A DNA stretch of 64,000 nt, from the IMG/VR virus record IMGVR_UViG_3300042691_042003, positions 62,001-126,000 of that record, one strand, 5' to 3'. Position numbers and translations under genes: made by a program. Below, piece after piece: positions 12,442-35,037 of the stretch; within the stretch, counting starts at the first letter, position 1; every line of letters starts with the position of its first letter. The notes under the pieces are model-generated. The model was not told the DNA's origin, did not search any database, and was given only the letters and a program-made list of their open reading frames with translations.

Positions 12442-12469
12442 AAAGATTATAATAAAAAAATCCATAAAA

Positions 12470-14029: not shown

Positions 14030-14030
14030 A

Positions 14031-14387: not shown

Positions 14388-14839
14388 TGAAGAATCTTCT
14401 TACATACGATCAATTTAATGAACAATACCTTCCTTATTTTGGAGTAAAACAAGCCTTAGATGATTCTAAGAATTTCATTACGAATGAGGAAAAAATGTCT
14501 GATTTTCATAGAATTTATACTATGAGTCCTACTTGGTGGATTGCTTGGAAAAGAGAAAATGGAGAAGATTATGGAATTAAACAAGATGCATTTTCTAAAA
14601 CTTATTCGGTTTCTAAAGGAGGAAAAGTTTCTTTTATTTTTGATTATGGTAGAAATAAAGTTTTTACTAATGAATCTCCTGAAATTTTAAAGTTAAAAAA
14701 AGATTTATCTCAAAAAGAATTCGATAAAATAAAAGATAAAGCCGAAGGGGTTGGAAAACCCAAAGAAGATAAAGGAGAAAAGAAAGAAAAAAAGAAAGAA
14801 AAAGGAGCAGATGACATCATGTCATCATTAGGAATATAA
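14387..14839 (+). CDS. Putative head internal protein (leader MKNLLTYDQFNE)
   Basis: Shared N-terminal leader; charged C-terminus. Confidence 0.6.
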   Translation: MKNLLTYDQFNEQYLPYFGVKQALDDSKNFITNEEKMSDFHRIYTMSPTWWIAWKRENGEDYGIKQDAFSKTYSVSKGGKVSFIFDYGRNKVFTNESPEILKLKKDLSQKEFDKIKDKAEGVGKPKEDKGEKKEKKKEKGADDIMSSLGI

Positions 14840-14860
14840 AAAAAAATAAAAAAATAAAAA

Positions 14861-15778: not shown

Positions 15779-16593
15779 TGAAGAATTTGAAAACATACGA
15801 AGAATTTTTAAATGAATCGATTCCTTCTTACTCTTTTGATGGAAATCAAATTGAAGTGGGATCTTCGGTTCAGTCTTTGGATGGATTTTCAGGCATTATA
15901 ATTTCAAAAGAAATTTCTAACGGTAAAGTTTCTTTTAGAGATAATAAAGGAATTATTCACATCTGTGAATCAAAAGATCTTATTATCGATGATTTAAATG
16001 AGGGATTAAAATGGTGGGATATAGCTAAAGGTATTGTTGCTTCAGATGCTATTAAAACCGGACCTAATTTTAAGAACGGAAGTATTCTTTCTACTTTAAT
16101 TTCTTTAGCATGGAGAGATAAAATTACAAATAAAATTGAATCTATAAGAAATAAGCCAGGTTATGATGAAATGAAAGATGTTGCTTTTACTCTAGCTGAT
16201 AAATTAAGTAACGATCCTAGAATGTATGGGTTAGTTAACAAATTAGCTAGTCATCCTAGAATAACTACAATTTTTACTCCTTCTCAAAAAGAAAAAATAA
16301 AAGCTGCTAAAGTTAATTTAGAAAGACAACAAATTATTAAAGATATTTCTAGTTATATCAATGATTCTTTAACTCCTGAAGAAAAGAAATTTTTTGATGA
16401 TATAAATAATTTAATTAAAATAAAAAACCCAGAATCCGAAGAAATAGAAGAAGATGTTACAACCGATCCTAACAGAACAGTCGGAACCGGAACATACACA
16501 ACTACACATTCGGATCCAAATGTTTTAACTAAAGGATATTCTAATACTACCGATTCTGGATCTAATGGAAGCTATCCGGTTTATATAGGCTAA
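15778..16593 (+). CDS. Putative head internal protein (leader MKNLKTYEEFLNE)
   Basis: ATG at 15778 (TAATG overlap) preferred over TTG 15727; second LNE/G site inside. Confidence 0.65.
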   Translation: MKNLKTYEEFLNESIPSYSFDGNQIEVGSSVQSLDGFSGIIISKEISNGKVSFRDNKGIIHICESKDLIIDDLNEGLKWWDIAKGIVASDAIKTGPNFKNGSILSTLISLAWRDKITNKIESIRNKPGYDEMKDVAFTLADKLSNDPRMYGLVNKLASHPRITTIFTPSQKEKIKAAKVNLERQQIIKDISSYINDSLTPEEKKFFDDINNLIKIKNPESEEIEEDVTTDPNRTVGTGTYTTTHSDPNVLTKGYSNTTDSGSNGSYPVYIG

Positions 16594-16619
16594 GATAAAT
16601 ATAAAAAAATAAATTTTAA

Positions 16620-17015
16620 ATGAAAAATTTACTCTCTTTTGAAGAATACATTAATGAAAATTACATCCAAGAAGCCACAGATGCTGATGGGTTTGATCCT
16701 GCTAAAGGAAATGTAACAGATCCTGAAAAAGGTGATATTAAAGCAACTACTGGGAAAAATAATGACCCTGGATTTACTTCGGATCAAGCTCCTGATAAAA
16801 TTGCAAGTCCTGTTTCTACTATTTCTGATATGAAACCAGGTAAAGAATATGTTCTTACCGTAGATGGTAAAAAACATACTGATATGCTTTATCAAGGTGT
16901 TACTGATGGAGTTCATATTTTTAACGGAGAAGATAAGGCTCATGATATCACTTTTACCGATTCTGATTTATCCTCTGTTATCTCTAAAGGTGGTGTAGTA
17001 GAAGTTGCCGAATAA
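16620..17015 (+). CDS. Putative head internal protein (leader MKNLLSFEEYINE)
   Basis: Shared leader; preceded by GATAAATA; C-terminal module shared with 12470..14029. Confidence 0.65.
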   Translation: MKNLLSFEEYINENYIQEATDADGFDPAKGNVTDPEKGDIKATTGKNNDPGFTSDQAPDKIASPVSTISDMKPGKEYVLTVDGKKHTDMLYQGVTDGVHIFNGEDKAHDITFTDSDLSSVISKGGVVEVAE

Positions 17016-17033
17016 TTTCTACTTATATTACTT

Positions 17034-17513
17034 ATGCATTCAATAAAGAATAATAAACCTTCTAAGAAATCAGGATTTCAACAAGGTTATTTTCCTATAA
17101 ACGAATGTAAGAAATATCAAGGTAAAGGTCCTATAATTTATAGATCTTCTTGGGAGAAAAAATTTTGTTTATATTGTGAAAGGAATCCGGCGATCGTATC
17201 TTGGTCGTCGGAATCTTTCGTTATAAGGTATTTTAATCCTCTTGATAATAAATATCATAATTATTTCCCTGATTACGTTTTAAAATTAGAAAGCGGAGAA
17301 ATTTTTATAGTTGAAGTAAAACCTAAAGCTCAATTAATAAAACCGGATCCTCCAAAGAAAAAAACTCCTAAGGCTTTAAAGTCTTATAAATGGCTTTATG
17401 AAACTTGGGTTACAAATATGTGTAAAAAGGCTGCTGCCGAAGAATTTGCTAAAGAAAGAGGATGGAAGTTTCTTCTCGTAACTGAAGATTTTTTTAAAGT
17501 TAGATCAGAATAA
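17034..17513 (+). CDS. Head completion protein (gp4-like, TnsA-type nuclease fold)
   Basis: KYQG, YRSSWE, WSSE, YFPD, VEVKP, K..AA..F...GW.F...TE. Confidence 0.9.
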   Translation: MHSIKNNKPSKKSGFQQGYFPINECKKYQGKGPIIYRSSWEKKFCLYCERNPAIVSWSSESFVIRYFNPLDNKYHNYFPDYVLKLESGEIFIVEVKPKAQLIKPDPPKKKTPKALKSYKWLYETWVTNMCKKAAAEEFAKERGWKFLLVTEDFFKVRSE

Positions 17514-18259
17514 TGAAATTAATATCTAATTTTTTAGAATATATAATAGATCTTTTAAATCTTCAGCTTAGTACTTCTACTGAAGGAGAGAAAGAAGAAA
17601 TTATTACGGCAAAAAATGCTTATGAATGGTTTCTTAAAGAATCCGAAGATAAGAATAGTAAAAGAGTTGAAATAAATAAAGATCCTCTTTTATATCCTGG
17701 TAAAATTTATGTTTTTAAATATAATGCAAAATACAAAAACGTTTTAGATTATTGGGATAAACATCCAATAGTTCTAGTTTTAGGAAATTTACAAGGGGAA
17801 AAAGGGAAAATCGTTTTAGGTCTTAATATTAGTTGGTATCCTCCTGCAGCTAGAAAGTATATTGTTGAAACAATCAGGAAAATATATTCCTCAAAATATA
17901 AAGAGGCTATTATGAAAAAAAGTTATCAAGCTAATTCTCAAGCCCCTGTTTATTTAGATTTATACCAACTTAAAAATTTTTTAGATCAATATGGATTTTC
18001 TTTTGCTTTGAGATCTTATATTCCTGGTCAGATAATAGCTCCTAAATATTGTATATGCTATGAAGATTGGGACAAAGCAGTTTTACTAGATCAACCTAGG
18101 ATTTTCCCTGAATTAGAAGTTAATGATCCTTTTTATTCTCTAAGAAATATTTATGAAGAATTTAAGAATCATATAAAATATCAAAGAAATAATAAATCTG
18201 ATTTAAAAATAAAAAGAGACGAAGCAAAAGCTAAAGGAAAATATAAATTTACTAAGTAA
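17513..18259 (+). CDS. DNA end protector protein (gp2-like)
   Basis: PGKIYVFKYNAKYK..LDYWDKHP.VL, GLNISWYPP..R. Confidence 0.8.
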   Translation: MKLISNFLEYIIDLLNLQLSTSTEGEKEEIITAKNAYEWFLKESEDKNSKRVEINKDPLLYPGKIYVFKYNAKYKNVLDYWDKHPIVLVLGNLQGEKGKIVLGLNISWYPPAARKYIVETIRKIYSSKYKEAIMKKSYQANSQAPVYLDLYQLKNFLDQYGFSFALRSYIPGQIIAPKYCICYEDWDKAVLLDQPRIFPELEVNDPFYSLRNIYEEFKNHIKYQRNNKSDLKIKRDEAKAKGKYKFTK

Positions 18260-18297: not shown

Positions 18298-19911
18298 ATG
18301 GCCGGTTTTGTAAATCGAGACGAAACTTCACAAGGAGCACCGACTCCTGCTGCAAGAAATTTAGTCAGTAAAGCATTAAAATCTCTTTCATCATTTGGAA
18401 TGATGTATGATGATATGGTGCTTAAAAATTCTAAAGCTATTGGTATTAATGAAGATCGATATGGTTGGAGGATGGATCCTCGAAATGTTGCAGGAGGAGA
18501 ATATGACGATTATGCACTTTTTGCTAATCTTTCAATGACTGATATCAATCTTAGAAAATCGATTTCTATTTTTGATAAATCATATCCAAAGAAAAGAGAA
18601 GATTTAAGAAAATTCGCTATCCAAGATGAAATTGAAGAAATTCTAGATACCCTTTGTGATGAAGCAATTGTTTATGACGATAAAAATTATTTTTGTTTCC
18701 CTCTCGCTTTTGATGATGAAACTCTTGAACCTGGAACTCTTGAAGCAATAAAAATTGCTCTTGATACTAATTTTAAAAGAATTTATCAGTATTTTGGATT
18801 TAATAATGATATAGCTGGATGGTCTTATTTCCGTAAATGGTTAGTTGATGGTTATCTTGCTTTTGAAATTATCTACAATAAAGATCAAACAAGAATTATT
18901 GGATTTAAAGAACTTGATCCTATTTATCTTGAGCCGGGTCTCGATAAAGAAGGAAAGAAAATTTGGAAACAATTTAAAGGTCAACCTAACAAAGAAAGAC
19001 TTATTTATGATTCACAAGTAATTTATATTTCATATGCAAACGTAAATACTGTTAATCGAGTTTCTTATGTTGAAAGATTAATTCGTTCTTTTAACCTTTT
19101 AAGGATTATGGAACATTCTAGAGTTATTTGGGCAACTGTTAACTCTTCATTTAAGACTAAATTTGTTATTCCAGTTGGAGGAAAATCAAAAACTCGAGCT
19201 AAACAATCTCTTGGAGTTCTTATGCAGAATTACAGAGAACAAATTGATTTTGATACTGATTCAGGAGAACTAAAAGTTAATGGTAAACCAATGATGCCTT
19301 TCAATAAAGAATATTGGTTACCTTCCGGTGAAGCTGGAGAACCAACTATTGAAACAATCGGCAATGATGGACCTGATCTTTCAGATACTGAAGCTCTTAA
19401 ATATTTTAGAGAGAAGCTGATTAAGGTTTCTAAAATCCCCCTTTCAAGATTTGATATGGAATCTCCTCCTTCTTGGGAAATGAATGCTGAAGGGATGACT
19501 AGAGATGAAATTAAATTTGGTCGTTTTATTACTCGTCTTCGTTCTGTATTCCAAGAAATTCTAGTAAAACCTCTTTGGATTCAAATGTGTTTAGATTTCC
19601 CTGAATTGAAAGATGATGATGCGTTTAAAGCACAAATTGGAGTAAAATATCATAAATATAATATTTTTGAAGAAATGAAAGAAATTGAAATTCTTCAAAA
19701 AAGATTAGATTTTGTAACTTCAATGAAAGATGGCCTAGTTGAAACCGATGCAAATATGAATGAAATTAAATATTTTGCTTCTGAATTCTTAATACAAAGA
19801 TTCTTAGGTCTTACTCCGGATGATCTAAGAGTTAATAGAAAACTTAAAGAAATTGAAGATCGAGAAAAGATAGAATTAGCTAAAAAATCAGCTGAAGCTA
19901 CTGGAATATAA
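18298..19911 (+). CDS. Portal protein (gp20)
   Basis: WLVDG, ELDP, SYVER, EYWLP, SKIPLSR, TRDEIKFGRFITRLR. Confidence 0.95.
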   Translation: MAGFVNRDETSQGAPTPAARNLVSKALKSLSSFGMMYDDMVLKNSKAIGINEDRYGWRMDPRNVAGGEYDDYALFANLSMTDINLRKSISIFDKSYPKKREDLRKFAIQDEIEEILDTLCDEAIVYDDKNYFCFPLAFDDETLEPGTLEAIKIALDTNFKRIYQYFGFNNDIAGWSYFRKWLVDGYLAFEIIYNKDQTRIIGFKELDPIYLEPGLDKEGKKIWKQFKGQPNKERLIYDSQVIYISYANVNTVNRVSYVERLIRSFNLLRIMEHSRVIWATVNSSFKTKFVIPVGGKSKTRAKQSLGVLMQNYREQIDFDTDSGELKVNGKPMMPFNKEYWLPSGEAGEPTIETIGNDGPDLSDTEALKYFREKLIKVSKIPLSRFDMESPPSWEMNAEGMTRDEIKFGRFITRLRSVFQEILVKPLWIQMCLDFPELKDDDAFKAQIGVKYHKYNIFEEMKEIEILQKRLDFVTSMKDGLVETDANMNEIKYFASEFLIQRFLGLTPDDLRVNRKLKEIEDREKIELAKKSAEATGI

Positions 19912-19956: not shown

Positions 19957-21801
19957 ATGAGCAATTATTTACTTGTACTAGAAAGATCTGAAGGTAATCT
20001 TGCAGTTTCGAAAGAAGGCGATAAGTATGTCCTAGAAGGAATTTTTACTGAAATCGGAGTAAAGAATAAAAATAATAGAATTTACGACGAAAAAGAATTA
20101 CTTCCACATATTGAAGAGCTACAAACAAAATTAAAAGGAAATAAACTTCTTGGAGAACTAGATCATCCTAAATCTTTTGATATTTCTCTTAGAAATGCAT
20201 CACATGTAATAGAAGATATTAGCTATGATAAAGGGTCTAAGAAAGTTACTGGTAGAATTCGTTTACTTAATACGGATGCCGGTAAACAAGCTATGGCTCT
20301 TGTTGACGCTGGAGTTCCTCTTCATATTTCTAGTAGAGCTGCTGGTGTTGTTGAAGGTAATGGTCATGTAAAAATTAAGAAAATGTTTACTTATGATTTA
20401 GTTGCAGATCCTGGATTTGCTAACGCTGAATTAAAAAGAGTAAACGAATCTTTTGGATTTTCTGATGACGATTTAATTCAAATATTTGAAATTCCTAGCA
20501 CAATAGACGAATCATTTGTTGATGATAAATATACAAAACAAACAAAAAAAGAAGAAATGGATTCTAATCAATACATCAAGGTTGAGGATTTCAATGAATA
20601 TACCAAGCATTTAAAAGAAGAAATCGACGGATTGAAAAAATCTTTAACCGAATCTAAAAATTCAAACGATTCTGAAATCAATGAAGGTTTAGTTCGTTAT
20701 GCTGAAGAAACAGCAAAGAGAGTAAATCAAATCCAAGAATATGTTGGAAAACTTGCCGAATCGGTTGATGGTCTTATTTCACATAACGATTATATCGTTG
20801 AAAATCTAGAAAAAGTTAAAGATTATGCTGAAATGGTTGGAGAAAGATCTAATCAAGGTATTAATTATGCTGAGAAGCTTGCTGAATCGGTAGATCATCT
20901 TATCGAATATACCAAGATAATTGCTGAGAAAGCTGATCAAGGTATCGAATACACTAAGCATATTGCTGAAATGACAGATAATAATATCGAATACACAAAG
21001 CACGTTGCTTTAAAAGCTGATCAAGGTATCGAATACACTAAGTATATCGCTAATGAAAATTCTAATCGTTGGAATTATCAAACCTATATGAATGAGCAAC
21101 TTGATAATGTAATTTCTCATAACGATTATATCGTTGAAGGAACTTCTTCTATTATTGAATATACTGAATATCTCAAAGAACAAACCGAAAATCTTGCTAA
21201 TTACATGAACCATGTGGTTGAAAAGATTAATGAAGGATTTGTTCCTAATTCTTTTGAACCTAAAGATGATTTTGAAAAAGAAATTTCTGAAAAAATCGGA
21301 TCTATTTTAGAATCAGTTAAAGAAGAGGTTTCTTTTGAAAAGAAAGATAATAATTTGAATTTCTTAAATTTCCTTTCTGAAAGTAAAAGAAATCAATTCC
21401 ATTCTCTTAACGATGATATGAAAGAAAGAGTTATTTCTACATTTGAATCTAATAAATATTATGGTTCTGCTGATGCAGAAAAGCTTTTCGAATCTATCTT
21501 TATTATTCAAGCCCCTGTAATGAATTGGCTATCTAATATGCCTTCTAAATACAGAGAAGCATGGAACGGACTTAATGAATCTCAGAAAAATGCAATCAAA
21601 GCTCAAGCTTCTGTTAGAAATCTTGATACTCAATACAAAATTGACGATTTCTGGTCTACAAGAGATTTAAGAACTGTTAAAGTTGAAACTCCTCTTACTG
21701 AATCTAATGAAACAGTAATTGAAGAATCCCCTAAATATGTAACTCCTTCTACATATATGCAAACAGTTGAAGACGAATTAAGAAGGAGATTTAAAAGATA
21801 A
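19957..21801 (+). CDS. Prohead protease (gp21) fused to a scaffold/core domain
   Basis: LEGIF, NKNNRIY, GELDHP, ISSRAAG, YDLVADPGF in the first ~160 aa; then ~450 aa acidic coiled coil. Confidence 0.9.
   Translation: MSNYLLVLERSEGNLAVSKEGDKYVLEGIFTEIGVKNKNNRIYDEKELLPHIEELQTKLKGNKLLGELDHPKSFDISLRNASHVIEDISYDKGSKKVTGRIRLLNTDAGKQAMALVDAGVPLHISSRAAGVVEGNGHVKIKKMFTYDLVADPGFANAELKRVNESFGFSDDDLIQIFEIPSTIDESFVDDKYTKQTKKEEMDSNQYIKVEDFNEYTKHLKEEIDGLKKSLTESKNSNDSEINEGLVRYAEETAKRVNQIQEYVGKLAESVDGLISHNDYIVENLEKVKDYAEMVGERSNQGINYAEKLAESVDHLIEYTKIIAEKADQGIEYTKHIAEMTDNNIEYTKHVALKADQGIEYTKYIANENSNRWNYQTYMNEQLDNVISHNDYIVEGTSSIIEYTEYLKEQTENLANYMNHVVEKINEGFVPNSFEPKDDFEKEISEKIGSILESVKEEVSFEKKDNNLNFLNFLSESKRNQFHSLNDDMKERVISTFESNKYYGSADAEKLFESIFIIQAPVMNWLSNMPSKYREAWNGLNESQKNAIKAQASVRNLDTQYKIDDFWSTRDLRTVKVETPLTESNETVIEESPKYVTPSTYMQTVEDELRRRFKR
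20860..21060 (+). repeat. 42-bp (14-aa) period degenerate repeat in the scaffold domain
   Basis: ADQGIEYTKHIAEM / TDNNIEYTKHVALK / ADQGIEYTKYIANE; AGCTGATCAAGGTATCGAATACACTAAG at 20931 and 21015. Confidence 0.85.
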
Positions 21802-21894: not shown

Positions 21895-23529
21895 ATGTAT
21901 TTAATTAACGAACAAGAAGTTTTCGGTAAATGGGCTCCAATTATCGAATCAACTACCGGCATTCAGGATCGTTCTAAAGTTGAATGGATGTCTAAGTACT
22001 GTCATTATCATGAATTGTACGAAAATAATAACCTCGCTCAACTTGGTGCTGTAAATGGCATGGGAGCTACTCGTTTCCCTGGAGATCCAGGAACTCAAAG
22101 TCAGTTCTTCTCTCAAGAAACTGGTTCTGGTGATAAGGCTCACACTCTTCTTCCTCTTGCTATGCAAGTTGCAGCTCAGACTGTAGGTCTTGATCTAGTT
22201 CCTGTTGTACCTATGCCTGGTCCTATGGGTGTTCTTACCTATCTTGACTTCGTATATGGTGGTGGTAAAACTAATGGTACTGGTGCTAACATTCCTCTCC
22301 TTGTAAAAGTTGATGTAGGATCTACTGCTGCTCCTGGTGCTGCTGGAACTACTGGAGGTATTACTTATACTTATGTAGGACCTTCTCGTATTGACGGTAA
22401 TGCTATATTCCATATTACTGGTTCTCTTACTACTGGTACTATTCTTTCTAATATGTATGCTTCTGCTGGTTCTACTAACCTTAACAATGTTAAATATACT
22501 GGAGCTGTTACTAAGGTTGAATTAGTTAAAGCTCTCGAAGATCATATTACTGGTTTCTCTGGAGATTCTCTTCGTGCTGGAATTTATGCAGATACTGCTA
22601 ATAATGGTGTTAATGATCCTCTTTCTCGTTTTGATGGTGAAGGAACTCAAGATAACATCATGAACTTAAGCCTTTTCAACAAATCTGTTGAAGCTAAAAC
22701 TTTCCAAGTTGCTGCTGCTGTTACTCGTGAGCAAGTTCAGGATCTTAAGCAATTTGGAGTTGATGCTGTTTCTCAGGTTGAATCTGTTCTTATTAACGAA
22801 CTTACTCAATCTATCAACAAGAACATTCTTTCTAGAATCTTCGCTCTTGGTGAAAGAAACCACTCTCAAGTTATTTCTACTCAAGGTCTTAACTTCTTCT
22901 TGAACCTTGGTTCTATTCCTAGATTAGTATCTTATGCTTCTGTTACTAACGCTCCTTATACTGCTTTTGCTTCTTATCTTAGCAGCAATTACAGTAATTT
23001 AACAGGTGCTACAATGAACGCAACTGAAAATTCTTCTTCACCTGCTGAAAACCTTTCTACTCGTCAGCGTAAGATCATGTCTAAGATCCTTGCAATTGCT
23101 AACCTAATTGCTATCCGTGGTCGTCGTGGTCCTGCTACTTTCGTAGTAACTAACGGTCAAGTATGTTCTGCTCTTCAGGATGTAGCTGGTTTCGTACCTG
23201 CTCCTATGGCTAACACCATCAATCAGATGAGCGGTTCTCTTTACCCAATCGGTACCCTTGCTGGTCTTGCTATCTACAACGATCCTAACATGGCTTGGAA
23301 CGATACTCGTTTCTGTGTAGGTCGTAAAGGTGATGGTAATTCTCCAGGACTCGTATTTATGCCTTACTTGATGGCTGAATCTGTTCAGACTATCGCTGAA
23401 GGTACTATGGCTCCTAAGGTTGCTGTTAAGTCTCGTTATGCTCTCGTTGAAGCTGGTTTCCACCCACAAACCATGTATTTAACTTCCGGAGTTCATATCG
23501 ATTCTCTTATCGCTGGAGGTTTAGTATAA
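21895..23529 (+). CDS. Major capsid protein (gp23)
   Basis: KWAPIIE, VVPMPGP.G, EQVQDLK, LINE....IN, RRG...FVV, FMPY, P...VKSRYAL. Confidence 0.95.
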   Translation: MYLINEQEVFGKWAPIIESTTGIQDRSKVEWMSKYCHYHELYENNNLAQLGAVNGMGATRFPGDPGTQSQFFSQETGSGDKAHTLLPLAMQVAAQTVGLDLVPVVPMPGPMGVLTYLDFVYGGGKTNGTGANIPLLVKVDVGSTAAPGAAGTTGGITYTYVGPSRIDGNAIFHITGSLTTGTILSNMYASAGSTNLNNVKYTGAVTKVELVKALEDHITGFSGDSLRAGIYADTANNGVNDPLSRFDGEGTQDNIMNLSLFNKSVEAKTFQVAAAVTREQVQDLKQFGVDAVSQVESVLINELTQSINKNILSRIFALGERNHSQVISTQGLNFFLNLGSIPRLVSYASVTNAPYTAFASYLSSNYSNLTGATMNATENSSSPAENLSTRQRKIMSKILAIANLIAIRGRRGPATFVVTNGQVCSALQDVAGFVPAPMANTINQMSGSLYPIGTLAGLAIYNDPNMAWNDTRFCVGRKGDGNSPGLVFMPYLMAESVQTIAEGTMAPKVAVKSRYALVEAGFHPQTMYLTSGVHIDSLIAGGLV

Positions 23530-23547
23530 TATACTTCATTCCTTATC

Positions 23548-23580
23548 AAAAAAGAGCTCTCTTTGGAGAGCTCTTTTTTT
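23548..23580 (+). terminator. Rho-independent terminator after major capsid gene
   Basis: AAAAAAGAGCTCTC-TTTG-GAGAGCTCTTTTTTT. Confidence 0.9.
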
Positions 23581-23612
23581 GTAGATATATAATTAAATTA
23601 GTCTAACTAAAT

Positions 23613-24179
23613 ATGGTATTTGTACAACCTATTAACGTTCTTCGTATACAAGAAGAGCTTAAAAAATATCAAGATCTTTGTAATCAATATAATCATACTC
23701 CTATAAAGAAGGAATTTGAAGATATTGTAAATTTTATTCTTCTTCATAGCGGTACTTCAGGGGATATATTTGAATGTAATTCTTCTACAATAGATTTCCT
23801 ATATGAAGATTTTATCCAAAAAATAAATGAAGCTCACGCTGAAGCAGGTGGAGAAGCTCAATGGGACAATGCAGTAGATGCTGCTACAAACGTTGCAAAA
23901 GGAGTAATGAAAGGTTTAGCAGTAGGAGCTGCTTTAACTGCAGTTTATATTGCATTTCTTTTTAAAAGAGGTAAATTAAAAGCTTCTTTAGATAATGAAA
24001 AGAAAATAGAAATGGATAAACTTAATGCATTTAAGAAAATTATTGATCTTTCTATTCAAGTTTCAAAAATAAAAGGAGAACCACCTCCTAAATTAACATC
24101 TTTAACCCAACCTTCTACAACAGAAGAGCCGGGAATGCCTGAAAAACCTGATAGTCCAGGATCATCTGATCAAAACTAA
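23613..24179 (+). CDS. Hypothetical late protein with a hydrophobic segment
   Basis: Preceded by GATATATAA; INE/A site; GLAVGAALTAVYIAFLF. Confidence 0.65.
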   Translation: MVFVQPINVLRIQEELKKYQDLCNQYNHTPIKKEFEDIVNFILLHSGTSGDIFECNSSTIDFLYEDFIQKINEAHAEAGGEAQWDNAVDAATNVAKGVMKGLAVGAALTAVYIAFLFKRGKLKASLDNEKKIEMDKLNAFKKIIDLSIQVSKIKGEPPPKLTSLTQPSTTEEPGMPEKPDSPGSSDQN

Positions 24180-24187: not shown

Positions 24188-25285
24188 ATGAAAGATTTAA
24201 ATTCTATAAAAGATTTATATTTGTATAAATTATACGAAGAAAATCTAATAAGTTCATTAGAAGAAATTTTAAATGAAGAAGATTCTAAGGAAGGAGAAAA
24301 AAAATCTCTTATCGATAAGATAAGAGATAAGATAAGGTCTTTGAGAGAAAAGATGCCAGAAAATCCTGATAATAAACCTGCTATTACTAAAAAAAGAGAA
24401 GCTATTTCAAATAAAATTGATACTCTTAAAGACCAAGTAGAAAAAGAGGAAAAAAAGGAGGAATCTAATGATAAAAAAATTAAAAGATTAGAAGAAGAAT
24501 ACAAAAAGGCTAAAGAAAATTATGAATCTCAGTATGCCGATTTAGTAGAAGCTGGTAAAAGTGCTAGAGAAGCTACTCATAAAATTCTTGAAAGTGGATT
24601 TTTTGGAAGAGTGAATTTTTTTGCTTGGTTATTTGTTAGTAGTAGAAGAGCTAAAACTAGGGTTGAATTTCTAGAAGGTCTTTCTAAAATGATTCCTAAT
24701 CAAGAAAAAGCTAAAATGGTTGATGATCAGCTTAATAAAGCTAAAGAAATCGCTGATTCTTTAACAAAACAAATGGATGAAGCTGAAGAAAGGGGAGAAG
24801 AATCTGCTAAGAAAACAGATCCAAAAAAATTAGAAAAAGCACAATCTTCTGAAACTCCTGAAGAAACTCCTGAAGAAACTCCTGAAGAAACTCCTGAAGA
24901 AACTCCAGAAAAAGGAGATGAAGAAAGGCAAAATTTAATGGGTTCCGGAAGTTCAGAAGAACCTAAAGAAGATGATCTAAAAAAAGAAGAACCTAAAGAA
25001 GATACAGAAGATGAGAAGAAAAAAATTGAATCTCAAATAGACGAATTAAAATCTAAATTAGAAGATGTTAAAAAATCGGCTGAAGAGAAAAAATCAGAAG
25101 GTGATGAAGAATCTTATAAATCAATAATGGATAACGTTGAAAAAATTCAAAATGTTATTAAAGAATTAGAAGATAAAAAATCAACATTAGAATCTTTTGA
25201 TGAAGATAGCTCTAAAATTTGGGCAATTAATTGGTTATTAAATGATCTTCAAAATAGAATTAATCTAGGAGAACTAAATGGTTGA
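24188..25285 (+). CDS. Highly charged coiled-coil protein, putative head internal protein
   Basis: E/K-rich; LYE/E, LNE/E and LE/S sites; ETPE repeats. Confidence 0.65.
   Translation: MKDLNSIKDLYLYKLYEENLISSLEEILNEEDSKEGEKKSLIDKIRDKIRSLREKMPENPDNKPAITKKREAISNKIDTLKDQVEKEEKKEESNDKKIKRLEEEYKKAKENYESQYADLVEAGKSAREATHKILESGFFGRVNFFAWLFVSSRRAKTRVEFLEGLSKMIPNQEKAKMVDDQLNKAKEIADSLTKQMDEAEERGEESAKKTDPKKLEKAQSSETPEETPEETPEETPEETPEKGDEERQNLMGSGSSEEPKEDDLKKEEPKEDTEDEKKKIESQIDELKSKLEDVKKSAEEKKSEGDEESYKSIMDNVEKIQNVIKELEDKKSTLESFDEDSSKIWAINWLLNDLQNRINLGELNG
24851..24910 (+). repeat. 5 x 12-bp tandem repeat (GAAACTCCTGAA) encoding ETPE
   Basis: Read directly from the sequence. Confidence 0.92.
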
Positions 25286-27233: not shown

Positions 27234-27485
27234 ATGAAAAAGCTAAAAAATATTCAATCAATTGAAGAATATTTAGGAGAAGCAGCAGGTTCTCCTAATA
27301 CAGAAAATTATATGTTTTTTGAAAATCTAAAAACTATAAAACAAAGTATAGAAGAACTTATGACCCTTGATCCTATTATGGTAGATCAAATTCTTCAAGA
27401 TGGTCATGATTGGGCAGAAGATCATATTGCAACTGCTAAGGAATCAATCGATCAGGTTACTCACTTTTTTATGAACAAAAAATAA
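27234..27485 (+). CDS. Small helical protein with leader-like N-terminus (IQSIEEYLGE)
   Basis: 83 aa; GHDWAEDHIATAKE. Confidence 0.65.
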   Translation: MKKLKNIQSIEEYLGEAAGSPNTENYMFFENLKTIKQSIEELMTLDPIMVDQILQDGHDWAEDHIATAKESIDQVTHFFMNKK

Positions 27486-27493: not shown

Positions 27494-27802
27494 TTATCGA
27501 CCTTTTTTCATTTTTATAATCATTAGAATTGATAGAAGAATCGAAGTGCTCATAAATCCATATGCAATGAATTTTGGAATTTGTGAATGAAATTCATGAA
27601 GCATCCAAAATATATTCATAAAAATCCAAGAAGTAACGGTTAAATTTTCTAATCTATTTTCTTTCTCGGTCCATAACATATAAAGAGAGAAAAAGATTGT
27701 TGGAACCGTCATTATTTTTGCAAGGAGAGATAATTGAAGGCACCATAATGAATCTTTAATTACCCAAGAAATAATATGCAGCTTATTAGAAATTTCTTTC
27801 AT
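27494..27802 (-). CDS. Small membrane protein
   Basis: Three to four hydrophobic segments; start overlaps the speD stop. Confidence 0.7.
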   Translation of the reverse strand: MKEISNKLHIISWVIKDSLWCLQLSLLAKIMTVPTIFFSLYMLWTEKENRLENLTVTSWIFMNIFWMLHEFHSQIPKFIAYGFMSTSILLSILMIIKMKKGR

Positions 27803-28227
27803 TAGTATTCAGAATTATTATAGCTGCTATGATCTCTTTCAATAGTTTCAGATCCATTAGACACTACATGTAAACCTTTATTTCGATCGATCATCATCCA
27901 ATCATAACTAACAAGTTCCATCATATCTAAATGATCTATAACTGTTTGAAGTTCATATTTTTTACATGAATAAATATCAAATTGTAACATAGGAACTTCT
28001 AAAGCATCCCATATATGAATTGAAGCATGAGATGTTGCTAAGGTAACAGTTCCAGTGATTCCTTCATTACCTTCTTCATCAACATAAACCGATGTAGGTC
28101 CAGCAACTACGACCATTCCAACTTTTTCTACTAAATCTCTAAACCATTTATTTAAGATTTCTTCTGATTTAATAGGTTTTTTACAAAAAGCTTTTACCAA
28201 CAAATGTTGATGATAGGGTATGAACAT
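27802..28227 (-). CDS. speD: Pyruvoyl-dependent S-adenosylmethionine decarboxylase family proenzyme
   Basis: HQHLLV, GITG...LATSHASIHIW (self-cleavage serine), FDIYSCK. Confidence 0.88.
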   Translation of the reverse strand: MFIPYHQHLLVKAFCKKPIKSEEILNKWFRDLVEKVGMVVVAGPTSVYVDEEGNEGITGTVTLATSHASIHIWDALEVPMLQFDIYSCKKYELQTVIDHLDMMELVSYDWMMIDRNKGLHVVSNGSETIERDHSSYNNSEY

Positions 28228-28989: not shown

Positions 28990-29943
28990 ATGAATCCTAA
29001 AAAAGCACTTTGGACTGAAAGATATCGTCCTACTGATCTTGATGAACTTATAGTTCCTCAACGAGTTTACAATAAACTAAAAAATGGTGTTTATCAGAAT
29101 CTACTTCTTTATGGTGGTCCTGGTTCAGGTAAAACTTCTTCGGCTAAAATTCTAGCTAAAGATCATCCATCAATGTATATCAATTGTTCTTCTGAAACCG
29201 GTGTTGATACGGTAAGAACTAAAATTACAGAATTTTGTTCTTCTCTTTCTGTTATCGATGGTGAACGTAAACTTAAAGTTGTAATTCTTGATGAATTTGA
29301 TGGTGTTTCCGATGCTTATATGAAAGCACTACGTGGAACTATCGAACAATTTGAAAAAACTGCTCGTTTCGTAGCTACATGTAATTATTTTAATAAGATT
29401 CCAGATAATATTCAATCTCGTTTCGAATGTATTAATTTCGATTTCACTGAAGAAGAAGAAAAAGAAATCGAAGTAAAATACTTCAAACGAATCTATGAAA
29501 TCGTTAAAAACGAAGGAATGGAAATCGAAAAAGATGCTCTCGTTGAATTAGTTCGACGTAAATTTCCTGATCTTCGTTCTACAATTAATGTTCTTCAAGG
29601 ATACTTTGCCGAAGGAAAACTGAAAATTACTTCTGAAGATGTTAAAAAATTCCATGGTGTCTTTAAAGATCTTTATGAACATATTTTTAATCCTTCAAAC
29701 GACGAAGTAAAGAATTATCAATATCTCGTTTCAAATTATTCTTCTAAAGTCGAAGATGTTATTCAATCTTTAGGAACTGATTTTATCGAATATATTCAAA
29801 TGGAAAGACCTCAGCTTATGCGTAAAGTAGGTGAAATCTGTTACGAAGTAAACAAACATTCATTCGAATTACGTTTTGTAGTTGATCCTGTGATTACTAT
29901 GCTGTCTCTCGTTTATCGAATTCAAACAATCATCAGAAGCTAA
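28990..29943 (+). CDS. Clamp loader ATPase subunit (gp44 / RFC family)
   Basis: LWTERYRP, GGPGSGKTS, ILDEFD, ALRG.IE, TCN, IQSRF, FPDLR. Confidence 0.94.
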   Translation: MNPKKALWTERYRPTDLDELIVPQRVYNKLKNGVYQNLLLYGGPGSGKTSSAKILAKDHPSMYINCSSETGVDTVRTKITEFCSSLSVIDGERKLKVVILDEFDGVSDAYMKALRGTIEQFEKTARFVATCNYFNKIPDNIQSRFECINFDFTEEEEKEIEVKYFKRIYEIVKNEGMEIEKDALVELVRRKFPDLRSTINVLQGYFAEGKLKITSEDVKKFHGVFKDLYEHIFNPSNDEVKNYQYLVSNYSSKVEDVIQSLGTDFIEYIQMERPQLMRKVGEICYEVNKHSFELRFVVDPVITMLSLVYRIQTIIRS

Positions 29944-29976: not shown

Positions 29977-30231
29977 ATGAAAAATTTCCCTTCTTATGAA
30001 GAATTCTTAAATGAAGGAAATTGGTCTCAAATGATGAAAGGTGTAAGAACTGGTTCGGTCCCTTACACTATTGTTGCTATCGATAGAGTAGCTAAAAAAG
30101 TCGTAGGCCAAGAAATCGTTAGTATTCGTGATGCAGTTCCTGCTTATTACGAAGATATGAAACGTAGATTCTCTAAGTTTCATTTACATATTGAAGATTC
30201 TACTGGAAAGGTAGTTTGGTCAGAAAAATAA
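29977..30231 (+). CDS. Leader-tagged putative internal protein 1 (MKNFPSYEEFLNE)
   Basis: Shared leader. Confidence 0.7.
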   Translation: MKNFPSYEEFLNEGNWSQMMKGVRTGSVPYTIVAIDRVAKKVVGQEIVSIRDAVPAYYEDMKRRFSKFHLHIEDSTGKVVWSEK

Positions 30232-30239
30232 AATCAGAA

Positions 30240-30617
30240 ATGAACACACATATTAAATCATTTAATGAATTCCTTAATGAAAGTGTAAATGATCCTGTTC
30301 TCGTTGCTTTACGTGCTGCTAAAGAAGATCGTAAAAAGATGATGATGGATAAGAAAGAAAGAATGAAAAGGCGAGTTTACGGTGCAAAACGTGAACAAAT
30401 GGAAGCTGAGCTAGATAAAATCTGGCAAGAAATTAAGGATAATAAGCAGCAACAATCTGATCTTTGGAGAGAAATGGAAGCCGAGGCCGGTGATAAGAGC
30501 CCAAACTTTTCAGATGCAGATGGCAACCGTTATGGTCAAAAATTCAACGATCTTGATGATGAATTAGAAAAGCTTTATCGTCGTCGTTCTGAATTAGAAA
30601 CAAAATTAGCATATTAA
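30240..30617 (+). CDS. Leader-tagged putative internal protein 2 (MNTHIKSFNEFLNE), coiled coil
   Basis: ATG 30240 preferred over TTG 30216; shared leader. Confidence 0.7.
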   Translation: MNTHIKSFNEFLNESVNDPVLVALRAAKEDRKKMMMDKKERMKRRVYGAKREQMEAELDKIWQEIKDNKQQQSDLWREMEAEAGDKSPNFSDADGNRYGQKFNDLDDELEKLYRRRSELETKLAY

Positions 30618-30618
30618 G

Positions 30619-30870
30619 ATGAATCATATTCCTTCATTTGAAGAATTTTTAAACGAAAGTTCTCATTATAAAATTGACGATTTCCAAGTTGGAGATGTTA
30701 TTCACTTTAAAGATGGTGAAGCTTGGAAAGTTGTTAAAGTTAATAATATAAGAGATTTAATCTCAGTATTTCCTCATAATAAGTTAGCAAAAGATAAAAA
30801 CGTTAGCATAACGATAGAATTAAGACTTAAATATCTTAATGATAACGTAACAAAAATTGAAAAGTCTTAA
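30619..30870 (+). CDS. Leader-tagged putative internal protein 3 (MNHIPSFEEFLNE), SH3-like body
   Basis: Shared leader; FQVGDVIHF..G..WKVV. Confidence 0.7.
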   Translation: MNHIPSFEEFLNESSHYKIDDFQVGDVIHFKDGEAWKVVKVNNIRDLISVFPHNKLAKDKNVSITIELRLKYLNDNVTKIEKS

Positions 30871-30871
30871 T

Positions 30872-31699
30872 ATGAAAAATATCCCTTCTTTTGAAGAATT
30901 CGTAAACGAAAGTTTGAACGAATCTCTTAGCTTAACTCTTAGGGATGTTCCTAAAATCGTTAAGGATTTCGTTTCGAGGACTAAATATATCAAAAATCTT
31001 AAAGAAAAAGATTGGTTAACTGCATCGGAAATTATCATAGTAACTGATAAAGATTTTGATATAAAAGGTAAATCAACAACTGGCAATTATATGTTGCTAG
31101 GACTTTATAAAACTTATGGACCTGTTTATAAAGTTGAATGGGCATCCGTAAGACCTGATATGAAATATCCTGCTAATGCTGGAATCTATAATAAAGAGAT
31201 TGATAAAGCCACATGGGAAAAACTAAAAAATGCCCATGAAAGAAAAATGATCGATCCAAAAAGTCTTACGGCTAATGATATTAAAAACACAGGAGATCTT
31301 TTAGGTAAATTCATAACCGATGAAATTAATACATCTTCGGTTCCTGTTAAAGGTCAATTTGATCCAACAAATTCAGGATCAATTAAAATGGAAATTGAAA
31401 GTGCTTATAAAGATTCAGAAGTTAGTATCGTTAGAGGAGATAATGTAAGAGTAGATTTCTACTTTAAACGTGCTGGTGATGGCCGTAATGTTGCTAAAAC
31501 TAATCTATTCTTTATCATAGATCCTTCTCAACAATCGGTAGAATTTAAAAATCCTGATGTTAGTGGTCTTAGTAGAGCAAACTACAGAAATATGAGAGAT
31601 ATTTCAGCATTCTTTAAGAGTTCTATTCAAGCTTGGAAGGATGAAGATAAGAGAAGATCAGATGCTATGCAACAAACAGCATTTAGTCAAGATAGATAA
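30872..31699 (+). CDS. Leader-tagged putative internal protein 4 (MKNIPSFEEFVNESLNE)
   Basis: ATG 30872 preferred over TTG 30857; shared leader. Confidence 0.7.
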   Translation: MKNIPSFEEFVNESLNESLSLTLRDVPKIVKDFVSRTKYIKNLKEKDWLTASEIIIVTDKDFDIKGKSTTGNYMLLGLYKTYGPVYKVEWASVRPDMKYPANAGIYNKEIDKATWEKLKNAHERKMIDPKSLTANDIKNTGDLLGKFITDEINTSSVPVKGQFDPTNSGSIKMEIESAYKDSEVSIVRGDNVRVDFYFKRAGDGRNVAKTNLFFIIDPSQQSVEFKNPDVSGLSRANYRNMRDISAFFKSSIQAWKDEDKRRSDAMQQTAFSQDR

Positions 31700-31714
31700 A
31701 AAAATAAAACAATA

Positions 31715-32014
31715 ATGAATAATCATATTCCATCATTTGATGAATTTTTAAATGAAAGTTCTCTTCAAGGAACTCCTAAATTTCTTCCAGGTAAAGCTGC
31801 TATTGCTTATGGTGATGAAGAAGGTAAAATCGTAGCTGCTGAATTTGCTAAAGATTGGAAGAAACTTAAGAAATACGACGAAACCGGTTGGTTAGATCCT
31901 ACTGAAATGAAAAACATGGGAATCGAACCTACAGATATTCTCGTAGCCTTCAAAGATTCTGAAGGAGGAATTAATGTATACACTTACGGTGAAGGAGGTG
32001 TAGAGCTAAAATAA
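31715..32014 (+). CDS. Leader-tagged putative internal protein 5 (MNNHIPSFDEFLNE)
   Basis: Shared leader. Confidence 0.7.
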   Translation: MNNHIPSFDEFLNESSLQGTPKFLPGKAAIAYGDEEGKIVAAEFAKDWKKLKKYDETGWLDPTEMKNMGIEPTDILVAFKDSEGGINVYTYGEGGVELK

Positions 32015-32025
32015 AAAATTAAAAA

Positions 32026-32583
32026 GTGAAACATATACAATCGTTCGACGAATTCATTAATGAATCAGAAGATCAGAATCTTCCTCTTAATGAAAATAAT
32101 TTAGTTTATATTAAAGATAAGAAATTTAAATCTTCACAAGATATTATGAATTTCTTTCAGAAAAATGCAGGTTCCGCTTTTGAAAAATTTATTTCTGATA
32201 AAATGGGAGTGAAAGCTAAAGCTGTAACTGGAGTTTCCAGAAGAGGTGATGCTGTTAATATTTCTACACAACCAATTTCTAAAAAAGATTTAGGAATTTT
32301 TGGATTTGTTTTTAGTGAAGTATCTATCGATTCTTTTGGTGGAGGTATAATTGAACATCAAATGGTAAATAATATGCAATTTGAATTTTGTCCTGCTATC
32401 TTCTTTAGATTACATGTTAGTTATAAACATATAGGAGGTGGTTCTAACGGTGCCGATATTGTACTTCCTAGTAATGATCCTTACAATACTCTTATTATGT
32501 ACGATATCGTAGAAAATCGTTTTCTAGATCAGGCCGAAGCTAAAGCTTCTAAAACTAAATATTGGGTCGAAGGATCTTGGTAA
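32026..32583 (+). CDS. Leader-tagged putative internal protein 6 (MKHIQSFDEFINE)
   Basis: GTG start; shared leader; second LNE/N site. Confidence 0.7.
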   Translation: MKHIQSFDEFINESEDQNLPLNENNLVYIKDKKFKSSQDIMNFFQKNAGSAFEKFISDKMGVKAKAVTGVSRRGDAVNISTQPISKKDLGIFGFVFSEVSIDSFGGGIIEHQMVNNMQFEFCPAIFFRLHVSYKHIGGGSNGADIVLPSNDPYNTLIMYDIVENRFLDQAEAKASKTKYWVEGSW

Positions 32584-32599
32584 AAATAAAATTTAAATA

Positions 32600-33427
32600 G
32601 TGAAACATATAAAATCATTTGACGAATTTTTAAACGAAGGTCTTAACGAGGCTAATATCTCATTCTATAAAAATGTAGTTCAGCAAGCTATTAAAGATGC
32701 TTTAGGGCATGATGTAAAACAATCTGATGTTAAAGTAGGAGCAAAAAAGCAAAGTGGAGGATATGATTTGATTACTCTTAATGGAAAACTTCTTTGCTCT
32801 TCTTCTCAACACGATGAAATGCTTCGTTCTGCAACTAATGCAATTAAAGAAGATCCTGCTAAGTATGGTTTGAAAGAATCTGCAATGAACGAAGCAATGA
32901 CTTTCGATGATGCTGTAAAGCAATTTACTGCAAATCCTTATGGAATTGGTGCTAGTCGAGTTCATGTTGTAGGAGATGAAGAACATCATGTTAAAGGTCA
33001 TAGAATTCTTAAATTCTTTCATTCAACTGCTTTCGATAGAGATAAAACTATGGCTAAACTAAAAACTCTAGGTTTTAGCGCAAAGAACATGACAAAGAAC
33101 ATGACCGATAAAGGATATATGTTCAGATATTATATAAGCCTTTTTGAAGGAGCAGTAAATGAAGATTCTATTGATGAAGCTGCTAAATGGCCTCTAACCG
33201 ATAAAATTGACAGTAAAACTTTTTATGATATGTGGGCTTCTTTAGATGTTGCTACTCAAAATCTCAGTGATTATATGGATGAAGCAAATAAAGGAAAAGA
33301 AAGTGATGCTCTATTCTCTTTGAAAGTTGCTTATGATGAGCTAACTGATTTAATGAAAAGTAAGACAATCGAAAAGCAGCTAAAAGCTATTGCAGAAGAG
33401 CTAAAAGATAAAAATGCACTTAAATAA
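32600..33427 (+). CDS. Leader-tagged putative internal polyprotein 7 (MKHIKSFDEFLNEGLNE)
   Basis: GTG start; shared leader; clustered internal sites LKE/SAMNE/A and LFE/GAVNE/DSIDE/A. Confidence 0.7.
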   Translation: MKHIKSFDEFLNEGLNEANISFYKNVVQQAIKDALGHDVKQSDVKVGAKKQSGGYDLITLNGKLLCSSSQHDEMLRSATNAIKEDPAKYGLKESAMNEAMTFDDAVKQFTANPYGIGASRVHVVGDEEHHVKGHRILKFFHSTAFDRDKTMAKLKTLGFSAKNMTKNMTDKGYMFRYYISLFEGAVNEDSIDEAAKWPLTDKIDSKTFYDMWASLDVATQNLSDYMDEANKGKESDALFSLKVAYDELTDLMKSKTIEKQLKAIAEELKDKNALK

Positions 33428-33429
33428 TT

Positions 33430-33669
33430 ATGAAGAATATTCCCTCTTTCGAAGAATTCTTAAATGAAGCTGCAAGAGTCGATACATTTCCTTACAAAGC
33501 TTCACATTCTAAAGATCCTAAAGGTTTTGGACTTTGGTATTTTAGTTTCAGTAAAGATGGTTCCGATTCCTTTTCCCCTGAAAAATCTATGAGTTACGGA
33601 GATGCTTTGAAATGGGCACAAGCTCAAGCAAAAGAAAAGAAACAATCTGTTATTTATGTAATGGGATAA
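33430..33669 (+). CDS. Leader-tagged putative internal protein 8 (MKNIPSFEEFLNE)
   Basis: Shared leader. Confidence 0.7.
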   Translation: MKNIPSFEEFLNEAARVDTFPYKASHSKDPKGFGLWYFSFSKDGSDSFSPEKSMSYGDALKWAQAQAKEKKQSVIYVMG

Positions 33670-33783: not shown

Positions 33784-35037
33784 ATGACTGGTAAGTACAC
33801 ATTAATCTTCGACGGTAACTTTTGGTTACACAAAACCTATTTTATAGGTCAAAAAATCAAGCAAGGCAAACCCTTCAATTTCATCGACGAACCGGATCAA
33901 GATAAAAATCTTCTTCTTTGGAAACTCTCTGTCGACTTCGCTGCTGAAATCAAACGCTTCGAAGGAATCACTAATCGAATTGTTTATACAGTCGATTCTT
34001 CTTCTTGGCGAAAAACATTTCATCCTGAATCCGAATATAAAGCTAATCGAGTAAAATCTTCGGAAATCAATTGGTCTCTTATTTACGATGTCCATAACGA
34101 ATTTATCCAATCTCTTGAAAAGATGGGCATCATTATTTCTCGTGTTCGAAATGCCGAAGCCGACGATCTTATCTTTGCTTGGTCTTCTCATCTAAATCAA
34201 CAAGGACAAAATGCACTTATTATCTCAGGTGATAACGATCTTCTACAACTCGTAAATCACGATAAATCTTCAGGTGCAAACACTCTTTATTACAATAAAT
34301 TCGATAAAGATCTACACGTTTTCTCGGGTTTTCAAAATTGGCTCGATATCGAAGAAATCACTAACGATATCTTCAATCTTCCCGTCGATCTCGTTTCTAA
34401 TACAAAAACTCATCTTCGTCAAATTATTAAAACCAATAAAATGAAAATCGACGAAGTCAATACAAACGAATTTATTTTTAAGAAAATTCTTCTAGGTGAT
34501 TCAGGCGATAACGTTTCTCCTCTTCATGTTACTATTAAAGAAACAAAATCAGGTCCTAAACGATTTGCCGTAACAGAAAATCATTCTAATCTAATTCTTA
34601 ATGAATTTAAAACCGATAAGGTTTTCGTAAATCAATCTCATCTATTCAACGAAGAATACATCAATCAAATCTGCGAAATTGCTAAGCGAGTAATTAAAAT
34701 CGAAAAGCCTATCGAAGAAATTCGTACTAAATGGGAACTTAATCGTAATCTTGTCTTTCTTCATAAAAAATGTATTCCTGAATCAGTTCTTACTTCAATG
34801 TTCGAACAAATCGAAGGATGTAATTTAACTCATTTTTCTGCTCTTGAATTACATAATCTTATGAATAAGGACGAAATTCTTAAAGGAACCACTTACGTAA
34901 AAGAAAAAGTCGATTCTTTTAATGAATCAGGAATTTTTAAATCTTCTATGAAGAAAGAATCTCCAATTGAAAATGTAAAAATAGTCGAAAAACAAAGTGG
35001 ATTCGATGATTCATTTTGGAAAGACCTCTTAAAATAA
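33784..35037 (+). CDS. rnh: 5'-3' exonuclease / T4 RNase H (FEN family)
   Basis: LIFDGN, SWRK, YKANR, EADD, SGDNDLLQL, GDSGDNV. Confidence 0.9.
   Translation: MTGKYTLIFDGNFWLHKTYFIGQKIKQGKPFNFIDEPDQDKNLLLWKLSVDFAAEIKRFEGITNRIVYTVDSSSWRKTFHPESEYKANRVKSSEINWSLIYDVHNEFIQSLEKMGIIISRVRNAEADDLIFAWSSHLNQQGQNALIISGDNDLLQLVNHDKSSGANTLYYNKFDKDLHVFSGFQNWLDIEEITNDIFNLPVDLVSNTKTHLRQIIKTNKMKIDEVNTNEFIFKKILLGDSGDNVSPLHVTIKETKSGPKRFAVTENHSNLILNEFKTDKVFVNQSHLFNEEYINQICEIAKRVIKIEKPIEEIRTKWELNRNLVFLHKKCIPESVLTSMFEQIEGCNLTHFSALELHNLMNKDEILKGTTYVKEKVDSFNESGIFKSSMKKESPIENVKIVEKQSGFDDSFWKDLLK

Follow-up and report, generated by a model that had tools for sequence, protein, structure and literature searches.

Can one capsid-targeting tag load several head proteins that are then cut apart into separate products? 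The question is raised by ORF 32600-33427 (+ strand) of the DNA analysed here, a 64,000-nt window covering bases 62001-126000 of a single 246,081-bp contig. A sequence-only reading had noticed clustered protease-type sites that separate domains behind a shared leader in this ORF, and similar internal sites in ORFs 15778, 11653 and 14861, and had inferred that one tag loads several small effectors which the prohead protease releases as separate proteins.

To place this ORF in its context, we first scanned the window for known phage families. The contig has 31% GC and nearly all of its genes lie on the + strand. PHROG scans identified a T4-like gene set: gp46-like SbcC (8816-10486), gp55 late sigma (14031-14387), gp4 head completion (17034-17513), gp2 end protector (17513-18259), portal (18298-19911), head maturation protease (19957-21801), major capsid protein (21895-23529), clamp loader (28990-29943) and an RNase H-type exonuclease (33784-35037). 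The best matches of the capsid protein in the phage collection are an uncultured 462-kb phage (55%) and the Lak megaphages (40%), indicating a distant T4-like jumbo phage without a close cultured relative in that collection. The presumed processing enzyme is the 614-aa ORF 19957-21801 (+ strand; phrog_207, 1.3e-39), whose N-terminal domain matches the T4 gp21 protease over residues 25-132 (PDB 5jbl, E=2.4e-5) and is fused to a scaffold-like, repeat-rich C-terminal region with Ile/Leu-x-Glu every 7-15 residues. In the capsid protein, LINE6, IIE18 and LYE43 are conserved in relatives, but no PDB sequence match was found from which to tell which of them serves as the maturation site. No alternative genetic code was needed to read these genes, and sequencing reads were not examined.

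We next asked whether the pattern of sites is genuinely present, and the observation held. ORF 32600-33427 encodes 275 residues (predicted precursor 30.9 kDa) from a GTG start, which is supported by close homologues that begin MKH/MKN with ATG at the same place. It consists of a leader (residues 1-13, 32600-32638) ending in the first putative cleavage site, LNE13; a GLNE spacer (residues 14-17, 32639-32650) ending in the second site; module A (residues 18-93, 32651-32878), which ends at LKE93; junction 1, the acidic spacer SAMNE (residues 94-98, 32879-32893); module B (residues 99-183, 32894-33148), which ends at LFE183; junction 2, the acidic spacer GAVNEDSIDE (residues 184-193, 33149-33178); and module C (residues 194-275, 33179-33424). 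Hydrophobic-x-Glu sites end at E13, E17, E84, E93, E98, E183, E188, E193, E228 and E266, of which E84, E228 and E266 had not been mentioned in the sequence-only reading and lie inside predicted helices. Within this protein alone the pattern is moderately unlikely: 8 sites follow residue 17 against 3.8 in shuffles (P=0.016), with 2 strict [LIVM]NE[AGSD] sites against 0.05 (P about 0.001) and 2 site clusters against 0.24 (P=0.02), and 5 of 8 sites fall in the 34 linker residues, 13% of the length (binomial P=0.0016). Genome-wide, the generic triplet is common (about 18 per 1000 aa) and is not enriched in tagged ORFs (16.5 against 18.2 per 1000 aa), such that single triplets mean nothing on their own and the comparative data carry the case. 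In contrast, the strict motif is about 4-fold enriched (1.72 against 0.46), and its top carriers are the protease/scaffold protein (4), the canonical substrate, in which RVNE/SF and xNE/GL are conserved in a relative, and ORF 32600 (3).

We then examined the leader. At least 20 ORFs of the genome begin with it, reading MKNIPSFEEFLNE/[SGA], or roughly MKN-I-P-S-F-E-E-F-L-N-E followed by S, G, A or N. Eight of these ORFs are consecutive, in an array at 29977-33669 (+ strand) between the clamp-loader and RNase H genes, a hypervariable cassette region with the same flanks in a 226.5-kb relative (compared by gene calls), while others (11653, 14387, 14861, 15778 and 16620) lie beside the head genes. 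Codons differ at synonymous positions among the copies, showing that it is the peptide that is conserved. T4 IPII and IPIII begin MKTYQEFIAE followed by Ala, and when the leaders are aligned by their ends the aromatic residue, the Glu, the Phe, the Ile/Leu and the final Glu coincide. In T4, positions 4 and 7 are needed for targeting and positions 8 and 10 for processing, and gp21 cuts after Glu in L/I-x-E (PMC9026906); these positions are conserved in kind. Asp at the T4 tag's Glu position blocks processing. The likeness rests on inspection of 13 residues rather than on a statistical search, as E-values are not available for so short a peptide, and removal of the leader, presence in virions and ejection were not measured. 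The leader is a T4-type capsid targeting sequence by sequence likeness and context, while its function here is inferred. We also looked for signs of late transcription, as would be expected of genes expressed together with head assembly: GATAAATA lies 14-33 nt upstream of four tagged ORFs but also elsewhere, and without a validated promoter model this leaves the timing of expression undecided. The tagged set includes enzymes, among them a nucleotidyltransferase and a glycosyltransferase.

The sequence-only reading had proposed structure prediction as a means to test whether the sites lie in linkers between independent domains, with burial of the sites in a single folded domain counting against it. 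We built an AlphaFold2 model with 26 homologues (pLDDT 73, pTM 0.39) and a second with 110 module sequences (pLDDT 88, pTM 0.52), and both show three separate domains: A, residues 17/20-89 (helix, three strands, two helices); B, residues 102-182 (alpha/beta); and C, residues 205-270 (a three-helix bundle). Confidence dips at residues 91-100 and 181-200, falling below 50 at 94-97 and 186-196 in the first model and to 70 at junction 1 in the second, and the low pTM means that the domains have no fixed mutual arrangement. E93, E98, E183, E188 and E193 lie in these linkers. A complex prediction with protease residues 1-170 and the linker-2 fragment 165-215 returned no verdict and is not evidence either way. 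No fold or family match gives any module a function: Pfam and PHROG scans of the ORF, of each module and of the neighbours gave nothing above threshold, Foldseek searches of the PDB with both models gave no match at E<=0.001, a wide VIA-align search matched only generic helical hairpins to module C, at Z 8 or lower, and an ESM Atlas shape search gave TM<0.5 throughout. Module A has a helix, three strands, helix order like a dsRBD, but only weak, non-significant rows point that way and we do not claim it. The predicted products would be A (8.3 kDa, pI 8.8), B (9.8 kDa, pI 9.5) and C (9.3 kDa, pI 4.9).

The other computational test named beforehand was to search each segment separately for stand-alone homologues. 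In the phage collection, tblastn of ORFs 32600, 15778 and 11653 and blastn of the array found nothing, and a search for related loci with the single protein found no relative. A word search, by contrast, found 29 relatives (homologous proteins designated P, related loci designated L; all metagenomic) of different make-up: tag-A-B-C (P0001, P0002, P0004), tag-B-C (P0003, P0005 and others), tag-A-D (P0017-19), tag-A-E-F (P0020, P0024), tag-B-G-C (P0015) and longer proteins with A inside (P0028, P0029). Searches with single modules found stand-alone tagged A proteins whose stop codon falls at the A boundary (P0032-P0034) and a stand-alone tagged C (P0036), and in a 257-kb relative (L003) module B ends a tag-H-I-B protein exactly at its LSE (L003:6680-7540). 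A profile search of 1.84 billion representatives gave 96 hits, including dozens of stand-alone B proteins of 75-110 aa, which make B (the NPYGIGA...YRYE family) the most widespread module; stand-alone A and C proteins, with tagged C homologues P0045, P0077, P0093 and P0109 besides P0036; and long strings of modules, namely P0082 (480 aa, six junctions), P0081 (788 aa, about ten modules) and P0070 (592 aa). Nearly every junction in those strings reads Φ-x-E-S-(V/L)-N-E followed by A, G or S, where Φ is hydrophobic.

To assess if sites accompany module boundaries in general, we first used BLAST HSP breakpoints, but this crude analysis was noisy because of truncated gene calls (40% near sites against 23% at random), and we replaced it with profiles of A, B and C. 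Among 130 full-length module instances, 110 (85%) have a hydrophobic-x-Glu site ending 0-3 residues before the module start, against 17.6% for random positions in the same proteins, and every instance is followed by such a site (83) or by the end of the protein (47), against 44% at random. The module boundaries were set from the window protein's own sites, although the sites themselves lie outside the profiles. Module A is always directly preceded by xNE/A in homologues. The spacers between paired sites vary freely in length (3-12 residues) and sequence while the sites stay, junction 2 being hypervariable in this way. Internal junctions mostly have Ser, Lys, Asn or Gly (Ser, Lys or Asn at P4) where leaders have an aromatic residue, Phe or Tyr, and keep the processing half of the tag but not the targeting half.

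We next analyzed how modules move between genomes. A close relative (L001, 80-88% DNA identity) has the order 99-aa ORF, tag-A-D, tag-B-C, whereas the window has the 99-aa ORF, tag-D, tag-A-B-C. Here D is the module of the upstream neighbor, ORF 32026-32583 (+ strand, 185 aa), in which the leader is followed by a 10-residue spacer ending in a second site (PLNE23/N) and then by module D, which in relatives is fused behind module A (P0017, 72% identity over residues 24-185). The homology blocks break at window positions 32064/32095, the last base of the E13 codon of ORF 32026 and the first base after its E23 codon, and at 32880/32888, between the E93 and E98 codons of ORF 32600, and the leader of ORF 32600 is shared by two blocks. 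Module A has therefore moved as a cassette, with joints at the putative cleavage codons. Other ORFs of the window behave the same way. The tagged downstream neighbor, ORF 33430-33669 (+ strand, 79 aa), is found as internal module 564-640 of P0081, with an almost intact leader fossilized at the junction; ORF 30619 is the first module of P0057; and the modules of tagged ORFs 27234-27485 (+ strand, 83 aa) and 14387-14839 (+ strand, 150 aa) are fused, the latter behind the former, in the single ORF L012:2906-3625 of another relative (L012), joined by LKE/SVILE/A.

The sites claimed for the three other ORFs are literally present, and these cases are compatible with the same reading, but the evidence is thinner, resting on site conservation in one orthologue at 47% identity and on one PHROG domain boundary. 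Tagged ORF 15778-16593 (+ strand, 271 aa) has DDLNE75/G and IEE225/D, both kept (INE/D, LEE/D) in the orthologue L012:4455-5279 at 47% identity. ORF 14861-15778 (+ strand, 305 aa) is also tagged, and its LFE79/A, after the N-terminal region, is kept as LFE/D in L012:3628-4449. Tagged ORF 11653-12441 (+ strand, 262 aa) has FLNE69/S, LYE84/D, LSE169/S and VIE194/A, and comprises an N-terminal domain, an acidic low-complexity middle and a small conserved C-terminal domain. The sequence-only reading had called this last domain DUF6582-like, but the Pfam match (PF20223) is sub-threshold (E=0.1, 13.4 bits against a cut-off of 27.3), while phrog_16160, a PHROG of small proteins, matches residues 196-233 (E=2.8e-6), starting two residues after VIE194.

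Based on these results, we propose that ORF 32600-33427 is a precursor (polyprotein) of internal head proteins, a reading to which we give a probability of roughly 0.6. In this model, the 13-residue leader takes the whole 31-kDa chain into the scaffold core of the prohead, where the gp21-type protease cuts after Glu in hydrophobic-x-Glu sites, removing the leader (E13, E17) and cutting the two exposed junctions, each bracketed by sites of the form Φ-x-E/S ... Φ-(N/D)-E/A (E93/E98 and E183/E188/E193). This would release A (basic), B (basic) and C (acidic) as separate 8-10 kDa proteins and discard acidic spacers of 4, 5 and 10 residues, and the products would stay in the head with the DNA and enter the host on infection, as T4 IPI-III do. 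The same junction grammar lets modules be combined freely, and relatives carry them singly, in other orders or as strings of about 7-10 modules. The analysis itself establishes the leader family and its likeness to the T4 tag, the protease homology, the three autonomous domains, the disordered junctions, the strong conservation of sites at module boundaries and the shuffling of modules, whereas targeting, cleavage at the junctions (no proteomic data were at hand), retention in the virion, ejection and any effector or anti-defence role are inferred from the T4 precedent. Three further triplets sit inside helices, indicating that the motif alone does not predict cutting. Taken together, the interpretation offered by the sequence-only reading is supported for ORF 32600 by every computational test that it had named.

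The alternative that survives best, although unlikely, is a multidomain internal head protein that loses only its leader, with the junctions acting as flexible acidic linkers whose Glu-containing motifs are scars of gene fusion, the ends of former leaders, rather than cleavage sites in use. In agreement with this, the P0081 junction before residue 564 still contains an almost complete leader, which means that part of the motif conservation could be historical; several junctions read like degenerate leaders (for example, SEEFEMNE in P0028); T4 gp21 does not cut every L/I-x-E (PMC9026906); and the generic motif is not enriched. However, sites persist at 85% of module starts in representatives down to about 25% identity while the spacers change freely, most internal junctions have a consensus of their own (E-S-V/L-N-E-A/G/S) without the leader's aromatic residues and are thus not simply decaying leaders, and paired sites around a short spacer are what removal of a linker peptide would need.

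Less likely still, the leader and junction codons could matter mainly at the DNA level, as short homologies for cassette recombination, with the protein motif as a by-product. The breakpoints against L001 lie on these codons and the leader region is the overlap of two homology blocks; shuffling of internal-protein genes at tag-coding sequence was proposed for T-even phages (Repoila et al. 1994). Against this, leader codons differ at synonymous positions among paralogues and junction peptides are kept across relatives with low DNA similarity; selection therefore acts on the peptide, and this alternative is compatible with the main explanation rather than exclusive of it. It is improbable that the tagged proteins are scaffold or core components, like T4 gp22, gp67 and gp68, cut into pieces to be expelled before DNA packaging. 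Several tagged ORFs do sit in the head-gene cluster (11653-17015), and T4 core proteins are cut at many L/I-x-E sites and leave the head (PMC9026906), but modules A, B and C are compact predicted domains of 8-10 kDa with the junction sites at their edges, unlike the scaffold region of ORF 19957, the array at 29977-33669 lies outside the head cluster in a hypervariable region, like the T4 internal-protein genes, and enzymes also carry the tag. Least likely, the leader is no capsid tag at all but, for example, another localisation or regulatory peptide, and the protein an ordinary cytoplasmic multidomain protein: no experiment links this leader to capsids and the promoter scan did not help, but the leader is close to the T4 tag at all four functionally mapped positions, is acidic and amphipathic rather than a secretion signal, and occurs in a T4-like phage with a gp21-type protease, in genes clustered beside the head genes.

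Among described systems, the T4 internal proteins IPI, IPII, IPIII and Alt, including their variability among T-even phages (PMC3012670, PMC9026906), share a short leader of the same type (aromatic-x-E-F-(I/L)-x-E, then a small residue), a gp21-family protease in the same genome, small, fast-evolving, non-conserved cargo genes in variable clusters, and products of the size predicted here (IPI*, IPII*). They are single-cargo proteins with one N-terminal cut (Alt also has a C-terminal cut), whereas here several autonomous cargo domains follow one tag, separated by internal processing-type sites, and the tagged genes are far more numerous. The T4 core proteins gp22, gp67 and gp68 undergo multiple L/I-x-E cuts, a pattern that the window's protease/scaffold ORF shows, but are degraded into small peptides that mostly leave the head, while in ORF 32600 the junction sites spare the folded domains. 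In the giant phages phiKZ, 201phi2-1 and SPN3US, a diverged gp21-type protease cuts after Glu at a three-residue motif, with many internal head proteins and several cuts per protein (PMC5694885, PMC10052503), but the cuts remove long propeptides, the motif is A/S/G-x-E, and no short universal leader or beads-on-a-string cargo has been described; by its capsid protein the present phage is nearer to T4 and the Lak-type huge phages. Polyvalent proteins of phages and conjugative elements (Iyer et al. 2017, PMC5512222) also combine many shuffled domains in one packaged polypeptide, with solo versions of the same domains and predicted processing into separate units after or before delivery. They are large, built from recognizable enzymatic and anti-defence domains (MuF, ART, MPTase peptidase, ParB-like, primase and others) and thought to be cut by an embedded zincin-like peptidase; no such domain was found in ORF 32600, where no Pfam family reaches threshold for the ORF or any module, the modules are 8-10 kDa orphans and the cutter would be the trans-acting prohead protease at a universal junction. 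Retroviral Gag-type polyproteins offer an analogy only: one assembly or targeting determinant brings a string of domains into an immature capsid, where the viral protease separates them at linker sites, but there is no homology, the cargo here is accessory rather than structural, and the capsid and protease lineages differ. In the open literature searched, an incomplete library in which absence is weak evidence, we found no description of tag-led strings of small cargo domains separated by prohead-protease sites, and we regard such a tag-led polyprotein of shuffled cargo as what is new relative to the T4 tag and internal-protein system.

A broader reading, about as likely as not, is that a clade of marine-type jumbo T4-like phages uses a general cargo grammar, in which one T4-like capsid tag is followed by 1 to about 10 interchangeable 8-10 kDa modules, each separated by a universal junction (Φ-x-E/S-V/L-N-E/A,G,S) that the prohead protease cuts inside the prohead. 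Whole cocktails of injected proteins, including enzymes, would be loaded in fixed proportion and released as separate molecules, and the junction codons would also serve as the recombination joints that reshuffle the cocktail. The finding would extend the T4 capsid-targeting system to very distant, uncultured jumbo phages, such that the tag can be used to read out a phage's packaged, probably injected proteome from sequence alone, 20 or more genes in this case. It would be a natural case of multi-cargo loading behind one tag with built-in release sites, which bears on T4-based protein-delivery engineering, and would supply a large set of small candidate host-takeover or anti-defence proteins with defined mature ends. 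It also gives a concrete, testable account of how orphan phage proteins evolve, as cassettes that fuse and split at protease-site junctions.

Outside the window, in the same genome (G000), two leader-bearing ORFs are enzymes: one is a cytidylyltransferase-like nucleotidyltransferase (C1:150639-151217; PF01467, 1.3e-6) and the other a family-2 glycosyltransferase (C1:237911-238813; PF00535, 2.2e-13). They may be packaged enzymes in the manner of T4 Alt. We also found that a tagged 208-aa ORF of this genome (C1:48337-48963) is an internal tandem duplication of a domain of about 70 aa, the two copies sharing 53% identity and being separated by LKE/SEDHKVEE/G; it is another candidate two-cargo precursor. 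Moreover, GATAAATA lies 14-33 nt before the start codons of four tagged ORFs, at positions 16594 and 29953 of the window and 183614 and 237889 of G000, as well as before several other genes. Given that a gp55 homologue is present, this sequence may be a late-promoter core related to the TATAAATA of T4.

Within the window, protease and scaffold appear fused in a single 614-aa ORF (19957-21801), while T4 has separate genes 21 and 22. The C-terminal part of this ORF holds near-repeats of about 14 residues (ADQGIEYTKHIAE-like) and many Ile/Leu-x-Glu sites, and 31 of 38 sites are shared with the orthologue at L012, a locus of a relative, at 62% identity. A 519-aa ORF (12470-14029) is packed with about 30 hydrophobic-x-Glu sites, like a core protein, and its last 65 residues are homologous to the C-terminal module of the tagged 131-aa ORF at 16620-17015 (33% identity, E=1.6e-8). 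Downstream of the capsid gene, a 365-aa, very charged ORF of unknown role (24188-25285) has a PEET x4 tandem repeat and a weak tape-measure-like PHROG hit. The capsid gene region itself (22001-24000) is markedly richer in GC than the rest of the window (38% against about 30%) and has a reversed AT skew. The only sizeable minus-strand genes in the window are two ORFs of 102 and 141 aa (27494-28227), which were not examined, and neither was a 1706-aa ORF at 55323-60443. One shuffled module (AIEIAGG...GLKVIGG...), found in L012:1653-2489 and in the relatives P0028 and P0042, looks like a transmembrane or glycine-zipper segment and is flanked by the same junctions inside tagged or multi-module proteins. 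Finally, some stand-alone relatives of modules B and C (P0072, P0087, P0093, P0094, and P0109) carry a different, longer amphipathic N-terminal extension (for example, MKQSQLRQMIKEEIK...) that also ends in a hydrophobic-x-Glu site, which may be a second type of tag in other phage lineages.
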